Positions 1 to 9,358 of a stretch of 64,000 nucleotides of DNA are shown here, in pieces. The first letter of the stretch is position 1. Each line of letters begins with the position of its first letter. The stretch is from Obrimoposthia wandeli (lineage: Eukaryota). A program made the position numbers and the translations under genes. Location of the stretch: contig CDROCS010001089.1 of assembly GCA_977020255.1 (NCBI GenBank), positions 62,001 to 126,000 of the forward strand, read 5' to 3'. Under the pieces are notes generated by a model, which was not told the origin of the DNA, did not search any database, and saw nothing but the letters and a program-made list of their open reading frames with translations.

Positions 1-920
1 TTTTCCCAAATACAGCGCACTGACTCACTCAAACTCTTTATAATTAGTAATCTAGCAGCTTTATCCACACCTATTTGATCTTCAGCTTTTTCGATCAAAG
101 TTAAGCAAAAACTTAAATCATCAACGCTCAGTTCTATTTTTTCTTCAAAGCTAGCTCCGGACATCACTTTAAAGCCTTGCATCGCTTTAGCGTATTTTTT
201 CTTGAGCGTCTTATTGTGAATAATTAACTCATTGTCTAAGCGTTGCAACTGGCTATCTTCTGCCTGTAACAGTCTATCTGCTTTGCTATTGGTGAGAATA
301 ATTTTACCGTCGGGAGAGAGCAGCATCGAGGCATCTGGCTGCTGGTTTAGAAAGTAACCTAATCGACTTGGCTCCAACTGGGCTGCACGTACTTTTTGCC
401 CCAGCGCCCAGACTTCTTGCATCGTTTTTTGTAGTTTAGCAGTATAGCGAATAATTTTTCTTTTCAGCGCAGCATCAGATCCATCGAAATATAAATTCAT
501 GGCGATCCAGTTTGGATGAGATATACCTATATCTAGCACCACAGTATCATTAATTTGCTGCGGCTCTAGCCACTCCCAAAATGGGGTTGCCATGATTTCT
601 TCATATTTCACATACTTTGAGAGAGCGATGGGCTTATTGGGATGATACAGCCTTTCAAATTTGGTCCATGGGTCAAACTGAATATAGTGGGTAATATAGC
701 CGCCAATCTCTTCATCACTAAAGCCGTATAGCAGCGGGCTGCTCAGATCACTTTCAACATCATTTGGAATCACTAATTCTGCACTTGTTCTATCTCGCAG
801 TGTGATAATACCTTTTGTAGCACCTGTTATTTCACAAAACAGCTGCAGAACTTCTTGCCAAAGCTCTATATTTTCAATGGTTTTGTAAATTGCTTGCTGT
901 AAATTAGCTAAATCTTTCAT
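1..920 (-). CDS. Partial (runs off window start) GAF-like + PAS-fold protein, probably a LuxR-family HTH regulator; the HTH would lie outside the window
   Basis: Hand-translated open frame from ATG at 920 (MKDLANLQQAIYKTIENIELWQEVLQLFCEITGA...YIQFDPW...QQPDASMLLSPDGKIILTNSKADRLL...) stays open to base 1; AAGG RBS upstream. This N-terminal/PAS layout is typical of LuxR-type helix-turn-helix regulators. The C-terminal HTH is not visible. Confidence 0.6.
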   Translation of the reverse strand, partial: MKDLANLQQAIYKTIENIELWQEVLQLFCEITGATKGIITLRDRTSAELVIPNDVESDLSSPLLYGFSDEEIGGYITHYIQFDPWTKFERLYHPNKPIALSKYVKYEEIMATPFWEWLEPQQINDTVVLDIGISHPNWIAMNLYFDGSDAALKRKIIRYTAKLQKTMQEVWALGQKVRAAQLEPSRLGYFLNQQPDASMLLSPDGKIILTNSKADRLLQAEDSQLQRLDNELIIHNKTLKKKYAKAMQGFKVMSGASFEEKIELSVDDLSFCLTLIEKAEDQIGVDKAARLLIIKSLSESVRCIWE

Positions 921-981
921 AGACCTTCTTTGGAATTTGGTGAGAAGGATTAGTCATTAATCACTCCCACCTTAAAAACGA

Positions 982-1575
982 CTACCGCTGCACTATCATA
1001 GCCCCATAATCTTGACTTGCGCTATCTGGATAATAATCCGATATTTCCCAAAGTAGCTGAAAACCATTCTTTTGGTAAAGCCTTAACTCAGGGTCACGCG
1101 AGTATCCACCAAAACTTTGTTCTAGATATTGTTTTATATCTCCTTTGTTTTCTAGTTGCCAGCGATTAAAGCCTGGTAGCCTAGATCCTAAACATAAAAC
1201 ACTGCAGCGCTTACTTTTAATGAATATATCATAATAGTGTTGAATTATAGCAGCTCCAACCGAGTATTTTGCACCTTCCGGTAAAGCTGACATACTAACA
1301 CCGTAAGCAATACTCCCTCCATTAAGGTGCGTTAGCTTAATAGTGCCATTATCTGTTTGTGCCGCCCATGACTTATTCGAGATCTGATTGACCAATTGAG
1401 AGGAGGCGTAGCCTATTAACTTTCCCGTTTCTAATTCAGCGACAATACTCCCTTCAGGAAAAATATCCATTCGCTCACGAATCTGATTTAAAGTTGCCGC
1501 GCTATCTCCCCAGGCTGTTTTTTCTATTGCATTGACTATTTCAATATCTTGCTCTGTCATCGTTCTAATAATCAT
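982..1575 (-). CDS. GNAT-family N-acetyltransferase, resembling the GNAT domain of YhcX-type GNAT/nitrilase fusions but standalone
   Basis: IIRTMTEQDI start, FPEGSIVAE, GSRLPGF, DPELRLYQKNGF and YYPD.AS.DYGAMI motifs; GGGGTGA RBS. Confidence 0.75.
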   Translation of the reverse strand: MIIRTMTEQDIEIVNAIEKTAWGDSAATLNQIRERMDIFPEGSIVAELETGKLIGYASSQLVNQISNKSWAAQTDNGTIKLTHLNGGSIAYGVSMSALPEGAKYSVGAAIIQHYYDIFIKSKRCSVLCLGSRLPGFNRWQLENKGDIKQYLEQSFGGYSRDPELRLYQKNGFQLLWEISDYYPDSASQDYGAMIVQR

Positions 1576-1620
1576 AGTTCACCCCATTCAAGTTGAAGTG
1601 ACTACTTTGACTAAGAACCA

Positions 1621-1661
1621 CAATACAAGCATGTACCTAAAAGTGTATTGAAAGTGCATTA
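1621..1661. promoter_or_regulatory. Putative operator in the divergent GNAT/NACHT intergenic region
   Basis: Inverted repeat CAATACA(1621-1627)-N16-TGTATTG(1644-1650), overlapping an imperfect tandem 11-mer AAAGTGTATTG/AAAGTGCATTA (1640-1661). Confidence 0.35.
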
Positions 1662-1761
1662 ATTGTTTGGAGCAGCAGTATTACGAGTAGCGTTCAGTAT
1701 TCCAAGAGTAACCTTACAGTCGTTTAACCCTCCTCTATCACTTTAAATTACTGGAAACACT

Positions 1762-4700
1762 ATGGCCAAACAACCTAAAAAGCTCGGAATCATTCAATGC
1801 CCTCCACCTGAAAACCATCAACAAATGATGCCCAGCGAGCTGCTAAAGGCGTTAATGATTGCAGGAGATTGGGACGGAAACGGTCTTACCGAAGTTATTT
1901 CTAACGATACATCAAAGGGTATCAGCTTAGATGGTATTAAACGCTGGATGCACAATAACACTATTCCCAAAGGTGAAAATAGAGAAGCATTAAACAGAGT
2001 TATTTTTAACTATTGTAAAGATGCAGATAGCGTCGATCCTCAACAGTGGCAAAATGCACTTTATCAATCTTGGATTCGCTATAGTGCCTCAGTCAAAAAT
2101 CTCACTAAGACAATCTGTCAGCGCGTTCTAAATGATGCCCTATATACACATCTTCCAGCGCTATTTGTCGTCGATCCTCCTAGAAAAATCAGCACCGATT
2201 ACATAGAAATGCAGCTACTTTATGACGCTCCAACAGTCGACTGTAGTGCCGCTAAATTGCACTTGCCAATGTCATTACTCGACAAAAAAGGCAAACAATC
2301 CTGCCTAATATTAGGAGCACCTGGAAGCGGGAAATCCAGTTTATTACGTAGCATAGCACTTGATATAGCCAGCGATAACTGGAGATCGGCAAAAGTACCT
2401 CTGCTGGTCATTGCCAGTGAGTATCTGCAGGCAAAAAAAAACCAGCCACATTTAGATTTAATTACTTTTGCACTTCGAGATTTCTTTATATCTGAAGCAA
2501 CATCATCGAACACTGACCACCATATAAAGCAATCTGTCATGCAAGAAAAATTTATACTTCTCATCGATGGCATCGATGAAGTTGCCATAGATGTGCCCGC
2601 TGTGAATGCGTTATACACTGAACTGAGATCTTTAAGGAATAGTGTCAGTTGGATAGTGATGGCGCGTCCCACCGGTCTGATGGGTACGTTGTACGAATCT
2701 AACCGCTATTGGATTGCGCAACTGAGCAATTCGTCTATTGAAAGGTTCATAGACCTTTGGACAGCTAGGCACAATTTAAATAGTAATTTAAAATACCAGG
2801 TTCTTGGTTCACCCAACATGTTACAATTGGCTAAAAATCCTTTTCTTTTAACTTTATTATGCTCCGCGCACGAAAACATTATCAAAGGATTTATTGCTAA
2901 CACACCCATTGCTACTTTGGAGTATATTCTTGAAGGCATCAGAATTCATGCTCAAAAAAAAACGCTAAACAGAAAAGTACTCTCTTGGGATGTTATCGAA
3001 AAACTTCAGCAATTTTGTTATACTATGCAGCATAATGCGCAAAATACAGCACTGTTTTTTAGTGAACGAACGTGGTGGCAGTTCAGCCCGAATACTCAAT
3101 CAAACAAGCAATTAAACAACGACTCAGAAGATCTTTTTAAGCAAATTTTACCCGCTCGTCTAATCACTACCAGCAATCACTGCCTATACCACTATCACTT
3201 TTTAGATATTAGTATCCAGCAGCAAATAATTGCGCACTCCATGTTAACCCGTCCCATCACCGATATGTTACAAAAACGTTTTAGTGAGAAATGGCGCCCA
3301 GCCTTTATACTTTATGCTGCTCTACTACATTACCGAGGTCGTATAAACGCATTTCAGTTGATAGTAAACACATTGCACAATGAGTGGGAGATAAATCATA
3401 ATTCTACTATTTTGCTAGCCGATATTTTTGCAAGCTCAGGCATTAAGAATACCCAGCTCTGGATTAAAAATGATATTCGCAATTTACTATACGATCAACT
3501 GTGGACCGTAAACCAGACTTCTTGCACTGTTTTAGAAACGCTAGTGAGTCTTGATCACCAATGGCTAGAACAAAAATTTAATAATAATATAGAGAGCGAA
3601 ATACAAAATACTATCAATGAATGTTCATCACCTAATGCAGATAATAGAAACTATCGCTTGATGATGGCAGGCCAACACACACGATCAGCATATAAACAAT
3701 TAAGCACTGTAAATACCTTAACCAGCTATCGCCTTATTGCAGCTACTTTTTGGGGCAATAATACTGAGAAATCGCTGTTAGCAGCGGCAGCTTACGCTGA
3801 TATAATCACTCCCTCAGAAAGACATAGCATTATTGCTTTAAGTAAGAAAGAAAACTTGCCACTGATAACCTCCAGTAAAATACTTGCCTTTGTCTCGGCA
3901 AAGCCCTGTTTAGAATTCATTCCCTTTCTACAAACATTCTGCAATTATTTGGTTAGTCAAAGCGCGGCTCTTTTTAAACTAATTTGTGATGTTTTAGCTG
4001 ATCTTGACAAACCAGCTGTAGTACCTGTTTTTGAACACTTACTTATTCACCAGTCTAAAACATTAGGCGCTGATCCAACTGCTTTTGACACATTATTATC
4101 TGCCATAGAGACACTCTCTTTCGAGCATATTCAGCGGTTACTCACTGAAAAGAACATCAAGCCTTATATTACTGACTGGCGACAGAGAATTACCAGTATA
4201 GTGTTGATAATCAGGTATAACGAAGCGGCTATTAGCAAAGCGATTACAGAAAGTGATAACCTGCAATACTTAATCGCAGCCATTGCGCTAGCGGCTAAAA
4301 AAAAACATCACTTTAGCGAACAGCTAATGTTATTGATTGTGCAAAAATTATCCGATAAAACTAACGAACTCTCTTTCAATCTGATAAATGATTTAGCCAC
4401 TATCGAGTTAATACGTATAAAGGCAGATAAACCCACTAGTTTATCAACCGTGCTTTTTAAGCTCACACAGCATTTATGCTGCTTGCTCTCTCAACCTCTC
4501 TCTCAGTCTCATACACAGCGGCAGCTTCAACACTTTCTGTGTTTATTACGCAGTGCCCTTAAACCACTTATCTATTCTCGCTGGCACCCTTTACACAGGT
4601 TAATTTTGAATCGTCTCTTTAACTCTCAAGACACCGGTTTGCTAGAAGTAGTCATACATGCGACAGGCAAACTCTATACAAATAGTGCGGACAAATTAAT

Positions 4701-5256
4701 TTTAACTAAGCTAGAGGCTATTTTATTTAGTAATAAAATTAGCTTGCGCAGTGCCGCTACATTAGCTATTGGGCGTATCGACTTTGCAACACTGAATCGT
4801 TTACAAAGTGCGCAAAGCGCCAAGTGTGCATTAGCTTCACTCGCCGCACAGCGAGGCTACTTAGTATTCAAAAGATTTTGGGTCGATAAGAGGGGTAAGT
4901 GCACTAATTGGCAAAACCCACCTATTAATATCTTCTATGTTTACGATACAGCCGCGGAGACCGCAGGTATATTTGCCCATGAGATGAGTCGCTATGGTTT
5001 TTGCGTCAGTAACAAAATGTGTGAGTGCGAGTTTTTTTTATTATTCAGCCCCACATCAATTATTGCCAAACAACAAACGCAAGCAGCGCAGTCTAACTGT
5101 TATCAAAAAAAACTTACCCAGAATGTTTTTCATATACCTAAAGATATACCGAACTCGTTAGCTATTATTTTAGCCCAAGCGCTGGCACAAAGTTTACATG
5201 CAACCTTAACACCTAAACCCTCAAACAGCACTTTTAGTACACTTTTAATGCCCTGA
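1762..5256 (+). CDS. NACHT (STAND) NTPase, NLR-like: putative N-terminal HTH, NACHT, helical/HEAT repeats, C-terminal TIR-like alpha/beta domain
   Basis: Walker A GAPGSGKS (aa 185, nt 2314), NACHT Walker B FILLIDGIDE (aa 264), IVMARP sensor, NPFLLTLL motif, YHFLDISIQQ winged-helix-like motif, HEAT-like LRSAATLAIGRI. Confidence 0.85.
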   Translation: MAKQPKKLGIIQCPPPENHQQMMPSELLKALMIAGDWDGNGLTEVISNDTSKGISLDGIKRWMHNNTIPKGENREALNRVIFNYCKDADSVDPQQWQNALYQSWIRYSASVKNLTKTICQRVLNDALYTHLPALFVVDPPRKISTDYIEMQLLYDAPTVDCSAAKLHLPMSLLDKKGKQSCLILGAPGSGKSSLLRSIALDIASDNWRSAKVPLLVIASEYLQAKKNQPHLDLITFALRDFFISEATSSNTDHHIKQSVMQEKFILLIDGIDEVAIDVPAVNALYTELRSLRNSVSWIVMARPTGLMGTLYESNRYWIAQLSNSSIERFIDLWTARHNLNSNLKYQVLGSPNMLQLAKNPFLLTLLCSAHENIIKGFIANTPIATLEYILEGIRIHAQKKTLNRKVLSWDVIEKLQQFCYTMQHNAQNTALFFSERTWWQFSPNTQSNKQLNNDSEDLFKQILPARLITTSNHCLYHYHFLDISIQQQIIAHSMLTRPITDMLQKRFSEKWRPAFILYAALLHYRGRINAFQLIVNTLHNEWEINHNSTILLADIFASSGIKNTQLWIKNDIRNLLYDQLWTVNQTSCTVLETLVSLDHQWLEQKFNNNIESEIQNTINECSSPNADNRNYRLMMAGQHTRSAYKQLSTVNTLTSYRLIAATFWGNNTEKSLLAAAAYADIITPSERHSIIALSKKENLPLITSSKILAFVSAKPCLEFIPFLQTFCNYLVSQSAALFKLICDVLADLDKPAVVPVFEHLLIHQSKTLGADPTAFDTLLSAIETLSFEHIQRLLTEKNIKPYITDWRQRITSIVLIIRYNEAAISKAITESDNLQYLIAAIALAAKKKHHFSEQLMLLIVQKLSDKTNELSFNLINDLATIELIRIKADKPTSLSTVLFKLTQHLCCLLSQPLSQSHTQRQLQHFLCLLRSALKPLIYSRWHPLHRLILNRLFNSQDTGLLEVVIHATGKLYTNSADKLILTKLEAILFSNKISLRSAATLAIGRIDFATLNRLQSAQSAKCALASLAAQRGYLVFKRFWVDKRGKCTNWQNPPINIFYVYDTAAETAGIFAHEMSRYGFCVSNKMCECEFFLLFSPTSIIAKQQTQAAQSNCYQKKLTQNVFHIPKDIPNSLAIILAQALAQSLHATLTPKPSNSTFSTLLMP

Positions 5257-5308
5257 CAAACGACGGCTTACCCCTAATGATTAGCGCTTTAATCATTAGG
5301 CAATCATC

Positions 5309-6379
5309 ATGACTCTCTCTATTCAAGGCTATCCATTTGACTACACTACAAATAGCAAATTTTCACCGATATATAACCAACAGATTAAACAGCGCACGTT
5401 AATCATTCCCGGCGGTGGTTGTGTTTATTATAGAGCGAACAAGGGAGACGTTTGCCCGTTTTGTGCTTTCCCTCCCTTCTCTCGCTACGTTATAAAGGGA
5501 GATAATCACGATGACTATTTTGAATCTTGGGCGCTCACCGCTGACATTTACCAACAGATGTATCTTACTGCACTACAAGATACACAGCCATTCGATAAGC
5601 TAGCGGTATTTAATGGCGGCAGTTTTTTTCCCAGTTCTGAATTACCCAGTCAGTTCCAACACTTTGTCTATGAAGATGTCGCTAAAAGATCGAATATCAA
5701 ACAGTTAATGGTAGAAGCCTACCCCAGTTTTATTTCAGAAAAAAAATTGCAGCAAGCGCAAGAAATGCTTGCTGCCACTGATTTAATGGTCGGAATTGGT
5801 TTTGAAAGTTTGGATGAAACGGTGCGTAACCTATACCTTAAAAAACGCATCGACTTAGCACTATTTGAAAATAAAGTAAAAATGATGCAAAAATTAGGGG
5901 TTCAAGTATTTGTTTATGCTTTTTTAAAAGCGCCTCAATTATCGGAAAGACAGGCCTTAAATGAAACCTTAGCGACACTTGATTATCTACATCAGCTCGG
6001 AGTTGATGAGATAGCCCTCTCTTGTGCTTTTGTGCCACCAGGAACTCAGTTAGAAGCTCTATTTCACGCGGGGGACTTTCGCCCACCTTGGCTCTGGAGT
6101 ATTATCGAAATTATTGAAACGGCTCAAAAAAAGGGCTGGCCGCTCTCTGTTGGTGGTTTTGATGATACTCCCCCTCCTATTGCCACACCAAGTAACTGCG
6201 CTAAGTGCGACGCAAGTGTTTTACAAGCGATTGATGAGCACCGATTAAGCAACGCGTCTAAACACTTATCAGCAATCGATTGTGAATGTAAGCACACTTG
6301 GTTTTCTCAAGTAAACACTTCTAAAGTGCAATTTGAAAACCAAGCAGATATAAACTATCAACTAATATCAACCAGCTAA
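5309..6379 (+). CDS. Radical SAM enzyme of the RaSEA/TIGR01210 (archaeosine synthesis) type
   Basis: C38-x10-C49-x2-C52; VFNGGSFF, VEAYPSFI, VGIGFES, YAFLKAPQLSERQA, FRPPWLWSIIEI and terminal NCAKCD...CECK.W motifs, all parallel to RaSEA-family motifs as I recall them. Confidence 0.75.
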   Translation: MTLSIQGYPFDYTTNSKFSPIYNQQIKQRTLIIPGGGCVYYRANKGDVCPFCAFPPFSRYVIKGDNHDDYFESWALTADIYQQMYLTALQDTQPFDKLAVFNGGSFFPSSELPSQFQHFVYEDVAKRSNIKQLMVEAYPSFISEKKLQQAQEMLAATDLMVGIGFESLDETVRNLYLKKRIDLALFENKVKMMQKLGVQVFVYAFLKAPQLSERQALNETLATLDYLHQLGVDEIALSCAFVPPGTQLEALFHAGDFRPPWLWSIIEIIETAQKKGWPLSVGGFDDTPPPIATPSNCAKCDASVLQAIDEHRLSNASKHLSAIDCECKHTWFSQVNTSKVQFENQADINYQLISTS

Positions 6380-6440: not shown

Positions 6441-7064
6441 AGCTCTCTTTAACGATGCTCTCATCTTATCAAACATAGCCATCACGCTTCGCGAAATAGA
6501 GTCGAACAAAAGTGGAACTGTTTGTCGCAGGGAATCGATTTTCTTCAATAGCAGCGACTGGACTCTCTATTTACAAATCGTTTTTACTCTTTGTACACTC
6601 CTTTAGTATCACTAGTTCCTCCTGAAAACAACAGCATTCAATGCTGTGATTTTTAAAAGCGAGTTACTGCTTCAATTTTTGCAAAACGGATCTTATTTTT
6701 ACCTTTCAATTGTCATTTTTTAAAAATAGTTCATTTTTACGTGCTTTTAGCGCAAAAAATGGCAAAAACCTATAACTAGTTGCAGTAGAAAAAACTCTAA
6801 ATCTCTGTTCCAATTAACATACGGATTGCAAGTAGCTTTCTACTGAATAAAAGAAGACGTCTTTAACATTGATCAACGCTCATTTTTGTTAAGATCAACA
6901 TAAATTATTCTTAAAGCTTGAGCGTTTCTAAATATTAGTAAGTAATATATTACCCATAAATAAGTATCTTGCGGCTATTTGGCACTTCCCGTTTAACTGA
7001 CAGAACGTGGCTAACTTAAGCAGATTCCTGACCATATAGGGATTGTTATTTTATCAACCAAACT

Positions 7065-7363: not shown

Positions 7364-9358
7364 TCAATCTGTCATTTTAAACTTATTAACATTTAGAGAG
7401 AGCCTTTGTGATAAGTGTGTCATTTGTTCCGACGTACCGCTGATTTTTACTATACTATTTTTATTTTCAATAGAGCGCTGCTGTATTGAACTTAGATTTA
7501 TATTGATCTCATGCACAACAGAGCTTTGCTGCTCTGTCGATACAGCGTTTTGGGTATTTAGATCATTCACTTTTTCAACTTGCTCAATGATCAAATTAAA
7601 TTGCTCTAATATATCTGCAACGCTTTCATTGGTACCATCTGCAGCTGTTTCACTTAAAACCATTGATTCCACTGCTTCTTTACTGCCTTTTTGTAAAGAT
7701 AAGATCATCTCTTCAATCTGTAATGTTGATTGTTGGGTTTTTTTCGCCAGTGTTCTAACTTCGTCGGCAACAACCGCAAAACCTCGTCCTTGATCCCCTG
7801 CTCTGGCCGCTTCAATCGCCGCATTTAGCGCCAGCAAGTTAGTTTGTTCTGCTATGCCTTTTATGACATCTAGAATAGCACTTATATCATTACTGTTAGC
7901 TTCAACAAGGCGAATGGTCTGCTGTGTGGAGTTCAAGTTATCTATCAATGAAGACATATTCGCGGTTGCAGCACTCAAACGCTGACTACCACTTTGCGCA
8001 GTTGAGTTAGCTTCATTTGACTTCACCGCTGCAGTTGAACAATTACTGGCAACTTCTTCAACCGTGGCACCCATTTCATGCATCGCGGCGGCGACTGAAT
8101 CCGTTTCTTGCTGACCTAACTCCACATCTTTTACCACTGCAGTAGATACACCGCTCAATGAACTAGCAGCTTCTTGCAATGAATCACTGGCATGCTGCAT
8201 ATCGCTAATTAAACCGCGAAAGTGATTTACAGTGTTGTTAAATAAAACAGTAAGTTTTCCTAAATCATCTTGGCTACGCGGCGTAATGGTAAAATCTAAA
8301 TTAGATTTTTCTCCTAGCTCAATCATCCCCTGTGACAGCTCTGTTAATTGCCTTGCAATCAAACGCTGTGTAAAAGTGCTTAATAAAACAGTTAACGTTA
8401 ATAGAATAAACGCACTGATTGATAACCAAGTGAAGCTAGTTATTTCTTCCTTTTCCTTTAGGTGCACGTAATTGGTCAGAGATTGCGCGATATAATCCTC
8501 TGCTTCTTTAAGTAAATTAATTCGTGCGGTTGATTGCTTAAACCAATAACTGGCATCGACATCAAACCCATCATTCTTTTGTGTCATTACACCACGAATA
8601 CGCAGCACTTCAGAAACGGCATTACCCGTCATTTTATTTTTAACATAGCGGATATTTTCAGCCGTTGAAAAATCGTTAAATAGTGAGATAAAACGATTTT
8701 GCTCGACAGCCAGAGAAATATATTTTACTTTCTGCTCCCCTGTTACCAAGTTTTTAGCTAATACGCCACTGATAACCGCTCTCTCGATTCCCGCACGCTC
8801 TTTGCCCTGCAAGAAATAGTAGTAGGCAGATACATATCTTGAAATATTTTTATTAGAAACAGCTTTGGCTAAATTAGCAGTCACCGATAACATGGCGCTA
8901 TTTTGCTTCGTATAATACCCAAGCGCTTCTTTACTTGTAATCGTCAAATTATCAATTGATCCACGAGTCCTGGATAAGTTATTTAAACTTTGGTTAATCC
9001 CGGATAAAACATTAATTAATTCCTTGGAGTTAACATTTTGCTTCCTTTTAGCAACGTTTTCTAAAAAAATTTCCTTTACTTCATCTGTAGCTTGGCGTTG
9101 CCTTTTTAGTTCACTAGAGAACTTGTTACCTTTGCTGTTTAAAAAGATGGCCGAAGCGCCCCTCTCTTTTTGCAACTCATGAACCAAAACACTTGAGGCA
9201 GCAGATAAACTTAACATTTCTTCTGCTGTTTTCATATTTTCAGTAGCCACCCAACTTTTAAAAAGAGTCGCTGCAATAAAACCAATTGCTAAAATTAAAG
9301 GGAATAAAACTATGAGTAAAAGTTTATACTTAATTGAAAGATCGTAAAAAATTTTCAT
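7364..9358 (-). CDS. Methyl-accepting chemotaxis protein with nitrate/nitrite-sensing (NIT) domain
   Basis: Two TM segments flank [12 protein letters not shown] and [12 protein letters not shown] motifs; HAMP; MCP signature [37 protein letters not shown]. Confidence 0.92.

Follow-up and report, generated by a model that had tools for sequence, protein, structure and literature searches.

Introduction

Elp3 is an enzyme that combines a radical S-adenosylmethionine (SAM) part with a GNAT part, and LuxR-family solos that carry PAS-type sensor domains sense signals other than acyl-homoserine lactones (AHLs). The radical SAM protein RaSEA is active only as a complex with ArcS, the enzyme that forms the lysine adduct beforehand (PMC11298593). 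Here we analyse a locus of four genes in which a RaSEA-like radical SAM protein (rSAM) is encoded next to a GNAT-like protein (GNAT), a LuxR-type regulator (REG) and a NACHT protein (NACHT). The locus occupies the beginning of a 64,000-nucleotide stretch of contig CDROCS010001089.1 (positions 62,001 to 126,000, forward strand), deposited under Obrimoposthia wandeli (assembly GCA_977020255.1); this whole stretch is referred to as the window.

An earlier note, made from the window sequence alone, had proposed a sensor-gated module in which the NACHT protein controls, or is co-expressed with, enzymes that act on an amine or amidine modification, possibly in defence or signalling. By comparing the gene neighbourhoods of rSAM homologues, we found that the fixed core of the module is GNAT together with the RaSEA-like rSAM, beside a ligand-sensing regulator, and that NACHT is an accessory second regulator. 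The pair may represent a sensor-controlled pathway for a small molecule. No prior description of this gene set was found in the literature.

Results

GNAT and the RaSEA-like rSAM form the fixed core of the module

An alignment of rSAM sequences was scanned against one genome per species (185,579 species), resulting in 80 loci, which are labelled L0xx in the following. They comprise 17 proteobacterial loci, 13 loci from the Candidate Phyla Radiation (CPR/Patescibacteria), Clostridia and unbinned sequences, and 50 archaeal loci. The neighbourhoods were compared by tblastn and by clustering of open reading frames (ORFs). A GNAT homologue adjoins the RaSEA-like rSAM gene in 29 of the 30 bacterial loci, covering Proteobacteria, CPR/Patescibacteria and Clostridia, and the sole bacterial locus without it (L018) lies on a contig of 5 kb that breaks off 2.2 kb upstream of rSAM. 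In none of 48 archaeal RaSEA loci was a GNAT gene found beside RaSEA. The distance between the two genes is at most 4.4 kb in 28 of the 29 loci, and the pairwise divergences of GNAT and rSAM are correlated (r = 0.86). In a metagenome-assembled genome (MAG) of Candidatus Falkowbacteria (CPR), both are joined in one in-frame ORF of 575 amino acids in the order GNAT then rSAM (L023:2257-3984, plus strand). A reverse look-up in a set of 5.8 billion proteins showed that GNAT homologues share contigs with rSAM homologues. As the same genes co-localise in many unrelated genomes, their adjacency is far beyond chance. We concluded that GNAT and the RaSEA-like rSAM are co-inherited as the fixed core of the module and that this core is always located beside a ligand-sensing regulator.

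The module is spread sporadically and was detected in about 30 species of the genomes scanned. The complete set of four genes was recovered from about nine gamma- and alphaproteobacterial lineages. The combination is thus real and recurrent, and the view of the earlier note that it is undescribed is supported. The earlier note had suggested that homologues of the four genes be examined for co-occurrence as neighbours in other genomes; they do co-localise, with GNAT and rSAM as the constant part and NACHT as an optional one. A transporter gene or further catabolic gene is conserved in none of the 30 bacterial loci. No copies were present among 50,697 phage records, and plasmids carry only distant rSAM homologues (22-28% identity). 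A complex prediction for rSAM and GNAT returned a score of 0.00, which, the controls not having been run, counts neither for nor against an interaction.

rSAM belongs to a bacterial sister family of archaeal RaSEA

rSAM matches the NCBIfam model of RaSEA (TIGR01210) over nearly its entire length (157.3 bits, E = 5.4e-46, model positions 14-308 of 313), and its score lies under the equivalog cutoff of 212.15 bits, which places it outside the RaSEA equivalogs. The second-best NCBIfam family, MnmL/YtqA, scored 33 bits. The protein contains the cluster motif C38-x10-C49-x2-C52 and a C-terminal site of four cysteines (C297, C300, C325 and C327; NCxxC...CxC). Both motifs are invariant in the 30 bacterial sequences and are common to 48 archaeal RaSEA sequences, as are several charged core residues. 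In a maximum-likelihood tree, the 30 bacterial GNAT-linked sequences and the 48 archaeal sequences each form a clade (100/100) with long branches between them. The block motifs also differ between the two groups (FNGGS versus YTSGS), and GGFDDxPPP occurs in the bacterial sequences only. This pattern indicates that rSAM represents a bacterial sister family of archaeal RaSEA and not RaSEA itself. A profile search against the PDB identified queuine lyase (6P78, 3e-9) and Elp3 (0.007). An ArcS/TGT-like gene is conserved in none of the 30 bacterial neighbourhoods (a genome-wide search for ArcS was not made), and the constant partner of rSAM is GNAT.

In databases, the homologues are named 'hypothetical protein', 'radical SAM enzyme (TIGR01210 family)' or 'archaeosine synthase beta-subunit'. 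The distant TIGR01210-like plasmid homologues mentioned above are encoded on pFRL5 of Streptomyces sp. F8 (L090) and on a plasmid of B. thuringiensis HD1002 (L091), both in biosynthetic-looking clusters. One of these clusters contains a P450, a serine hydroxymethyltransferase, a glycosyltransferase and a carbamoyltransferase, the other FabZ/KS/FabG, AsnB, a PPTase and ABC exporters. The occurrence of distant relatives in such small-molecule-like clusters lends modest support to the view that this group of radical SAM proteins is not confined to tRNA.

GNAT has the architecture of GNAT_L domains

Pfam returned nothing significant for GNAT (E = 0.17), and NCBIfam likewise gave no significant match. 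An AlphaFold model built with an alignment of 26 homologues predicts a GNAT fold (pLDDT 96.9). The top group in a Foldseek search with this model consisted of CurA (2REE/2REF), GphF (6MFC) and SxtA (7UCI), with TM-scores of 0.85-0.86, root mean square deviations of 2.0-2.5 and E values of about 1e-14, compared to a TM-score of about 0.6 and an E value of 1e-8 for ordinary GNATs. A sequence profile search gave the same proteins (CurA 3.8e-16, SxtA 7e-15, GphF 4.9e-11). Elsewhere, the same fold type occurs in fusions with aminotransferases, with carrier proteins and with carbon-nitrogen hydrolases of the B. subtilis YhcX type.

Motif B of GNAT reads LYQKNGF (general form LYxKxGF), includes the invariant Tyr167, which is the classical motif-B tyrosine of GNAT acyltransferases, and aligns with RimI and Ard1. 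In a HMMER alignment with CurA, this tyrosine is the counterpart of His389 (chain residue 174), Thr355 corresponds to Ser131, a position taken by Gly or Ala in several members, and Arg404 to a variable position. His389 and Thr355 are the catalytic residues of CurA. Because tyrosine replaces His389 and the positions of Thr355 and Arg404 are not kept, malonyl decarboxylation is unlikely. By fold and profile, GNAT belongs to the GNAT_L clade but lacks the catalytic His/Thr of the decarboxylases, and we read it as a putative enzyme that binds acyl-CoA or acyl carrier protein (ACP), with a GNAT_L architecture and acyltransferase-type catalytic equipment.

The core pair is accompanied by a sensor

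REG is encoded directly downstream of GNAT on the same strand. The full gene (372 amino acids, L001:1302-2420) extends 199 bp past the left edge of the window, and its GerE/LuxR helix-turn-helix (HTH) at residues 309-362 (31.4 bits, cutoff 23.5) lies outside the window. The N-terminal 300 residues are GAF/PAS-like, as indicated by a weak PAS match and by language-model neighbours that are GAF/PAS-GerE regulators. Besides the window, all 16 informative proteobacterial loci contain REG. In the loci of the CPR/Clostridia type, a histidine kinase with HisKA_7TM, HisKA and HATPase_c domains adjoins GNAT-rSAM in 12 of 12 informative cases, with response regulators nearby. A search of the module for LuxI (Autoind_synth, PF00765) or AHL-binding (Autoind_bind) domains gave no match even at E values of 10 or 0.1, and the module does not belong to the LuxI/LuxR-type AHL quorum-sensing systems. 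In L005, REG matches in three pieces (L005:4779-5640), which suggests frameshifts, so that a pseudogene or an assembly error is possible; GNAT, NACHT and rSAM are intact there.

Shared DNA elements precede GNAT and rSAM

The regions upstream of GNAT and rSAM each contain a tandem TACAC box, and the two boxes are identical (Table 1). GCACTTT-N3-TACACTTTT occurs twice in the window, with 0.22 copies expected by chance, and the GNAT-side and rSAM-side boxes are the only two copies on the 752-kb contig. The pair was also recovered independently by a repeat search as inverted repeat I2. Across the 1.35-Gb assembly, the TACAC pattern was counted 57 times compared to 86 times for a reversed-pattern control and is therefore not enriched at this scale, so only the counts within the contig and within the window are meaningful.

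On the rSAM side, the box is followed by a -35-like hexamer, CTGACA, which shares nucleotides with the stop codon of NACHT. Upstream of rSAM, TACAC-N6-TACAC-N9-10-CTGAC is kept in L005-L009, L011, L014 and L015. As it is non-coding (intergenic) in L008 and L009, the motif is an element at the DNA level. Matching boxes are located 64-71 nt before GNAT in L006, L008, L009 and L014, so that in these loci and in the window both GNAT and rSAM have the box 62-71 nt ahead of their start. In loci of the Vibrio/Marinomonas/Ferrimonas type, the intergenic region between the divergent genes contains related repeats, of the GTAC type and spaced by 11 bp. This distribution suggests a single small regulon, made up of the GNAT(-REG) pair and rSAM and driven by activator-type promoters, in which rSAM would not require transcription that continues from the NACHT gene. 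Either REG or the HTH domain of NACHT described below is a candidate for binding the TACAC boxes. The earlier note had considered co-expression of NACHT with the enzymes; since rSAM has its own conserved promoter-like element, a 52-bp gap is poor evidence of obligatory co-transcription.

Downstream of the hexamer and ahead of rSAM lies a perfect palindrome, and the sole Shine-Dalgarno-like AGG before rSAM is part of its 3' arm. The palindrome is kept only in L005, where the spacer differs at one position. It is a candidate operator or might form a hairpin by which translation is masked.

NACHT is an accessory regulator with a probable HTH output domain

The NACHT domain (PF05729) was detected at residues 181-332 (42.6 bits, cutoff 26.7), with the Walker A motif GAPGSGKS (G185-S192) and the Walker B motif DGIDE (D269-E273). 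The latter is of the D[GAS]hDE type, which is the Walker B signature of NACHT proteins (bioRxiv 10.1101/2022.07.19.500537). The C-terminal 784 residues form a long helical region for which no Pfam match, including HEAT, was obtained. Among the surveyed loci, full-length NACHT is restricted to L005, L006, L008, L011, L014 and L015; all CPR/Clostridia loci and over half of the proteobacterial ones lack it. NACHT homologues of at least 27% identity sit in GNAT/rSAM loci wherever the context is readable, while a homologue of 23% identity does not.

A hidden Markov model (HMM) of the first approximately 130 residues of NACHT revealed this N-domain in several other settings. It occurs as a free-standing protein of 182 amino acids just upstream of rSAM in L007 (9404-9952, plus strand), joined in L009 to a segment of five or six transmembrane helices, and in bitopic membrane proteins encoded directly downstream of rSAM in L010, L012, L013, L016 and L017. 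Four of the bitopic proteins map to L010:11076-11993, L012:11079-12434, L013:4444-5955 and L017:11087-12358 (all minus strand). Their layout is ToxR/RodZ-like, with the HTH N-domain, a low-complexity linker, one transmembrane helix and a conserved periplasmic C-terminal domain without known fold. Proteins of cluster c14 from Rhodobacteraceae were considered as further relatives of the N-domain; their matches, with E values of 3e-4 to 1e-3 against a small database, are borderline, and we do not claim them.

AlphaFold modelled the N-domain as a five-helix bundle (pLDDT 84.5). Almost all of its structural neighbours are HTH proteins of the XRE family (HigA, P22 c2, Stl, ImmR, DdrO, RodZ), with Foldseek probabilities of 0.99-1.0 at E values of 0.01-0.04 and VIA Z scores of 7.7-5.1, and the Atlas lead was HTH_3/HTH_26. 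The N-domain, or about 110 residues of it, is therefore a probable XRE-type HTH; because the Foldseek and VIA scores are modest, the assignment is probable rather than certain. As this domain is found in several settings, it would be a conserved output joined to interchangeable sensor modules, one of which is NACHT with its helical region.

These results do not agree with the idea that the NACHT NTPase is the organising sensor of the system, given its absence from so many loci, or that it is coupled to an effector, as its predicted output is a DNA-binding type of domain and not a toxic effector. We concluded that NACHT is an optional, accessory second regulator and not the centre of the system. 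In a PADLOC run, NACHT gave matches only at the level of the P-loop (E = 2e-4 or weaker), GNAT, rSAM and REG gave none, and seven proteins from related loci were assigned to no defence family.

Two types of locus carry additional proteins. L007 encodes a different NACHT-HEAT protein with HEAT_2 matches (L007:5761-8856, minus strand), whose resemblance to the NACHT protein of the window is confined to the NTPase domain (22% identity, E = 8e-5). Loci of the Rhodobacteraceae type encode TPR-CHAT proteins, which are caspase-like proteases (L021:5791-8115, minus strand; L019:6694-8981, plus strand; L018:3-1229, plus strand). In the same loci, small unannotated proteins (clusters c14, c22 and c24) are encoded between GNAT and rSAM, the slot that is taken by NACHT elsewhere.

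Layout of the locus and its genomic surroundings

The features of the locus are listed in Table 1. According to the ORF list and the translations, the four genes form two divergent pairs with spacers of 61 bp (REG-GNAT), 186 bp (GNAT-NACHT) and 52 bp (NACHT-rSAM), exactly as had been described before.

Table 1. Features of the GNAT-rSAM locus; positions are those of the window.
Feature	Position	Strand	Remarks
REG regulator	1..920, gene start at 920, off left edge	-	first 306 of 372 codons
GNAT-like protein	982-1575	-	197 amino acids
Divergent intergenic region, GNAT-REG pair / NACHT gene	1576..1761	.	186 bp; holds GNAT-side TACAC box
Tandem TACAC box GCACTTTCAATACACTTTT	1639..1657	-	63 nt upstream of GNAT start codon
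NACHT protein	1762-5256	+	1164 amino acids
NACHT N-domain, probable XRE/Cro-C1-type HTH	1762..2151 (about residues 1-125)	+	HMM, AlphaFold, Foldseek, VIA
Tandem TACAC box (5228-5246) and CTGACA -35-like hexamer (5253-5258)	5228..5258	+	box ends 62 nt upstream of rSAM start
Palindrome, 11-bp arms, 6-nt spacer	5273..5300	+	perfect; between -35-like hexamer and rSAM start
rSAM (radical SAM enzyme)	5309-6379	+	356 amino acids
Terminator-like hairpin	6631..6647	+	about 250 bp downstream of rSAM

The module is flanked by core genes (spoT, rpoZ, gmk and a saccharopine dehydrogenase gene), and neither an integrase nor neighbouring defence genes were found in its flanks. The first 10-20 kb contained no tRNA genes or Rfam families, and no RNA sequencing run was found to include this stretch. 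A methyl-accepting chemotaxis protein with NIT (nitrate/nitrite-sensing) and HAMP domains is encoded at 7364-9358 (minus strand); it is also present in L005 and lies outside the conserved module. A 27-nt inverted repeat with 85% complementarity links positions 1133-1159 in the GNAT coding region to positions 6328-6354 at the 3' end of rSAM and is probably due to chance.

The assembly comprises 1.35 Gb in 6,912 contigs, and the 752-kb contig of the window is bacterial in character. Its nearest relative is a MAG of the Oceanospirillaceae (L005), which has an rSAM of 92% identity and shares synteny in the left flank. The contig presumably stems from a symbiont or a contaminant or is part of a metagenome-like assembly.

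Discussion

A putative two-enzyme pathway under the control of a sensor

The constant pairing of GNAT and rSAM beside a receptor is consistent with a sensor-controlled two-enzyme pathway for a small molecule, a reading to which we give an even chance of being correct. By analogy with ArcS-RaSEA, GNAT would take the place of ArcS and form an N-acyl (amide) adduct from acyl-CoA or ACP and an amine. rSAM would then cut the alkyl C-N bond of the adduct by radical chemistry, so that a small molecule such as a primary amide or amine would be set free. The LuxR-type receptor or 7TM kinase encoded alongside may sense this product, which would result in a loop of the autoinduction type, and REG might bind the TACAC boxes and thereby control its own GNAT-REG pair as well as the rSAM gene. 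The suggestion of the earlier note that the enzymes handle an amine or amide C-N bond is plausible in this light. More tentatively, and with a good deal of doubt on our side, the pair might constitute a new class of autoinducer synthase that combines acyl-amine formation with radical C-N cleavage. Its signal would be read by LuxR-type receptors in marine Proteobacteria and by 7TM histidine kinases in CPR/Patescibacteria and Clostridia, with HTH-NACHT as a second, cytoplasmic, ligand-gated transcription factor.

Several points weigh against the two-enzyme pathway. Both the chemistry and the synthase-receptor idea are drawn from gene neighbours and from relatives. The nearest characterised relatives of rSAM (RaSEA, MnmL/YtqA, queuine lyase and Elp3) all act on tRNA nucleosides or 7-deazapurines and not on free acyl-amines. 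The nearest solved relatives of GNAT are decarboxylases, and the acyl-transfer activity of these proteins is disputed. A regulator beside enzymes fits substrate-induced catabolism equally well, and REG is a candidate, not an established, binder of the TACAC boxes. Finally, the HTH assignment of the NACHT N-domain derives from a model of moderate confidence with matches below the ranges that the tools regard as strong.

Alternative explanations

The relatives of rSAM invite an explanation in terms of RNA, namely a split tRNA modification enzyme similar to Elp3 or RaSEA in which GNAT binds acyl-CoA, rSAM installs or trims a base modification, and the regulators only tune expression. All characterised relatives (TIGR01210, TIGR01212, queuine lyase and Elp3) modify tRNA or 7-deazapurine nucleosides, Elp3 is made up of a radical SAM and a GNAT part, and a GNAT-rSAM fusion exists in L023. 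RaSEA, too, needs a partner, ArcS (PMC11298593). However, the sporadic spread of the module speaks against such an enzyme, as do its tight, phylum-spanning link to environmental sensors and its dedicated, regulated promoters. No RNA-binding domain, ArcS/TGT-like partner or tRNA gene was found nearby, GNAT resembles polyketide-loading GNAT_L domains and not the KAT domain of Elp3, and the order of the fusion is opposite to that of Elp3. We consider this explanation rather unlikely. In a pair for salvage, catabolism or detoxification that is induced by a sensor, the regulators would sense an external amide or amine that the enzymes then process, comparable to queuine lyase in queuine salvage. 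The 7TM kinase and the bitopic membrane HTH proteins linked to the pair are outward-looking, the rSAM profile matches queuine lyase, which is a C-N lyase of salvage, and inducible pathways usually have their regulator beside the enzymes. Nevertheless, such a pathway is unlikely in view of the lack of a conserved transporter or further catabolic gene in the 30 loci and of a GNAT, which typically builds amides and would be an odd first step of a breakdown. GNAT and REG also seem to be a single autoregulated pair, which is commoner in autoinduction, although this is a weak point.

The earlier note had named defence as one possible role. In an anti-phage or conflict system, NACHT, or TPR-CHAT in Rhodobacteraceae, would sense infection, and the enzymes would either modify nucleic acid or produce a molecule that is toxic or antiviral. 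Conflict systems do typically contain NACHT/STAND NTPases and TPR-CHAT proteins, and both recur here: NACHT is present in about nine lineages, L007 encodes an unrelated NACHT-HEAT, and TPR-CHAT occurs in L018, L019 and L021. Bacterial NACHT proteins can bear DNA-binding 'adaptor' N-termini, and the sporadic spread resembles horizontal transfer. A role in defence is nevertheless quite unlikely and finds no backing in our analysis. PADLOC gave similarity at the P-loop level only, with every component tested, the flanks are core genes without an integrase or neighbouring defence genes, and phage copies are lacking, while the plasmid homologues are distant and reside in biosynthetic clusters. Moreover, NACHT is missing from most loci, the enzymes and their LuxR or kinase sensor are constant, and the pair occurs in tiny CPR genomes together with a two-component system. 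The only argument for a chance adjacency of unrelated genes would be that two of the four proteins have weak Pfam scores. Chance adjacency is refuted by the neighbourhood comparison, in which the set reappears across many phyla, includes a fusion and has shared promoter motifs, and we give it virtually no credence.

Significance of a putative sensor-controlled GNAT-rSAM pathway

If the two enzymes work in sequence on a small molecule as proposed, RaSEA-type radical C-N chemistry would reach a bacterial small-molecule pathway by means of a different adduct-forming partner. A function would also be gained for a family that is now named only 'hypothetical' or by its TIGR01210 membership. The constant coupling to a receptor makes the module a candidate for a new signal system between cells or for sensing the environment, ultra-small CPR bacteria included; to our knowledge, little is established on signalling in these bacteria. 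A bacterial NACHT protein with transcription as its output would contrast usefully with the antiphage NLR-like proteins. Cultivable carriers, namely Vibrio agarilyticus SM6, Ferrimonas aestuarii, Marinomonas aquiplantarum CECT 7732, Palleronia abyssalis CECT 8504 and Pseudoalteromonas phenolica, make the module directly testable.

Comparison with known systems

The NACHT protein shares with bNACHT/NLR-related proteins a NACHT domain above the cutoff, the Walker A and B motifs and a tripartite organisation of N-terminal output, NACHT and long C-terminal region. It differs from them in its probable XRE-type HTH output, in belonging to a subfamily dedicated to GNAT/rSAM loci and in having no PADLOC family match. 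With autoinducer synthase/receptor pairs (LuxI-LuxR, LuxR-type solos and CqsA-CqsS), the module has in common an enzyme gene that adjoins a LuxR-family regulator or a polytopic histidine kinase, a putatively autoregulated enzyme-regulator pair and a candidate recognition element upstream of the synthase genes. In contrast to them, it contains no LuxI or AHL-binding domain, and its signal is putative.

The GNAT_L decarboxylases of polyketide loading modules (CurA, GphF and SxtA) are the top structural and profile matches of GNAT, which, unlike them, is free-standing and located outside any synthase. Elp3 unites a radical SAM domain of the same broad Elp3/RaSEA/MnmL group with an acyl-CoA-binding GNAT domain, and L023 provides a fused form of our pair. 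The module nevertheless does not consist of a single rSAM-KAT chain and is not an Elp3. Its genes are separate, the fusion in L023 runs from GNAT to rSAM, whereas Elp3 has an N-terminal radical SAM and a C-terminal KAT domain, its GNAT is of the GNAT_L type, and RaSEA is much nearer to rSAM than Elp3 is. ArcS-RaSEA is similar in that rSAM matches TIGR01210 end to end, contains the same Cys motifs and has an obligatory-looking partner gene. Here, however, the partner is a protein of the GNAT fold and not a TGT-like ArcS, and the pair is linked to sensors and regulators and not to a tRNA context. The parts of the module thus come from known superfamilies, and what is new is a partner-dependent rSAM of the RaSEA type with a new partner and in a new regulatory context.

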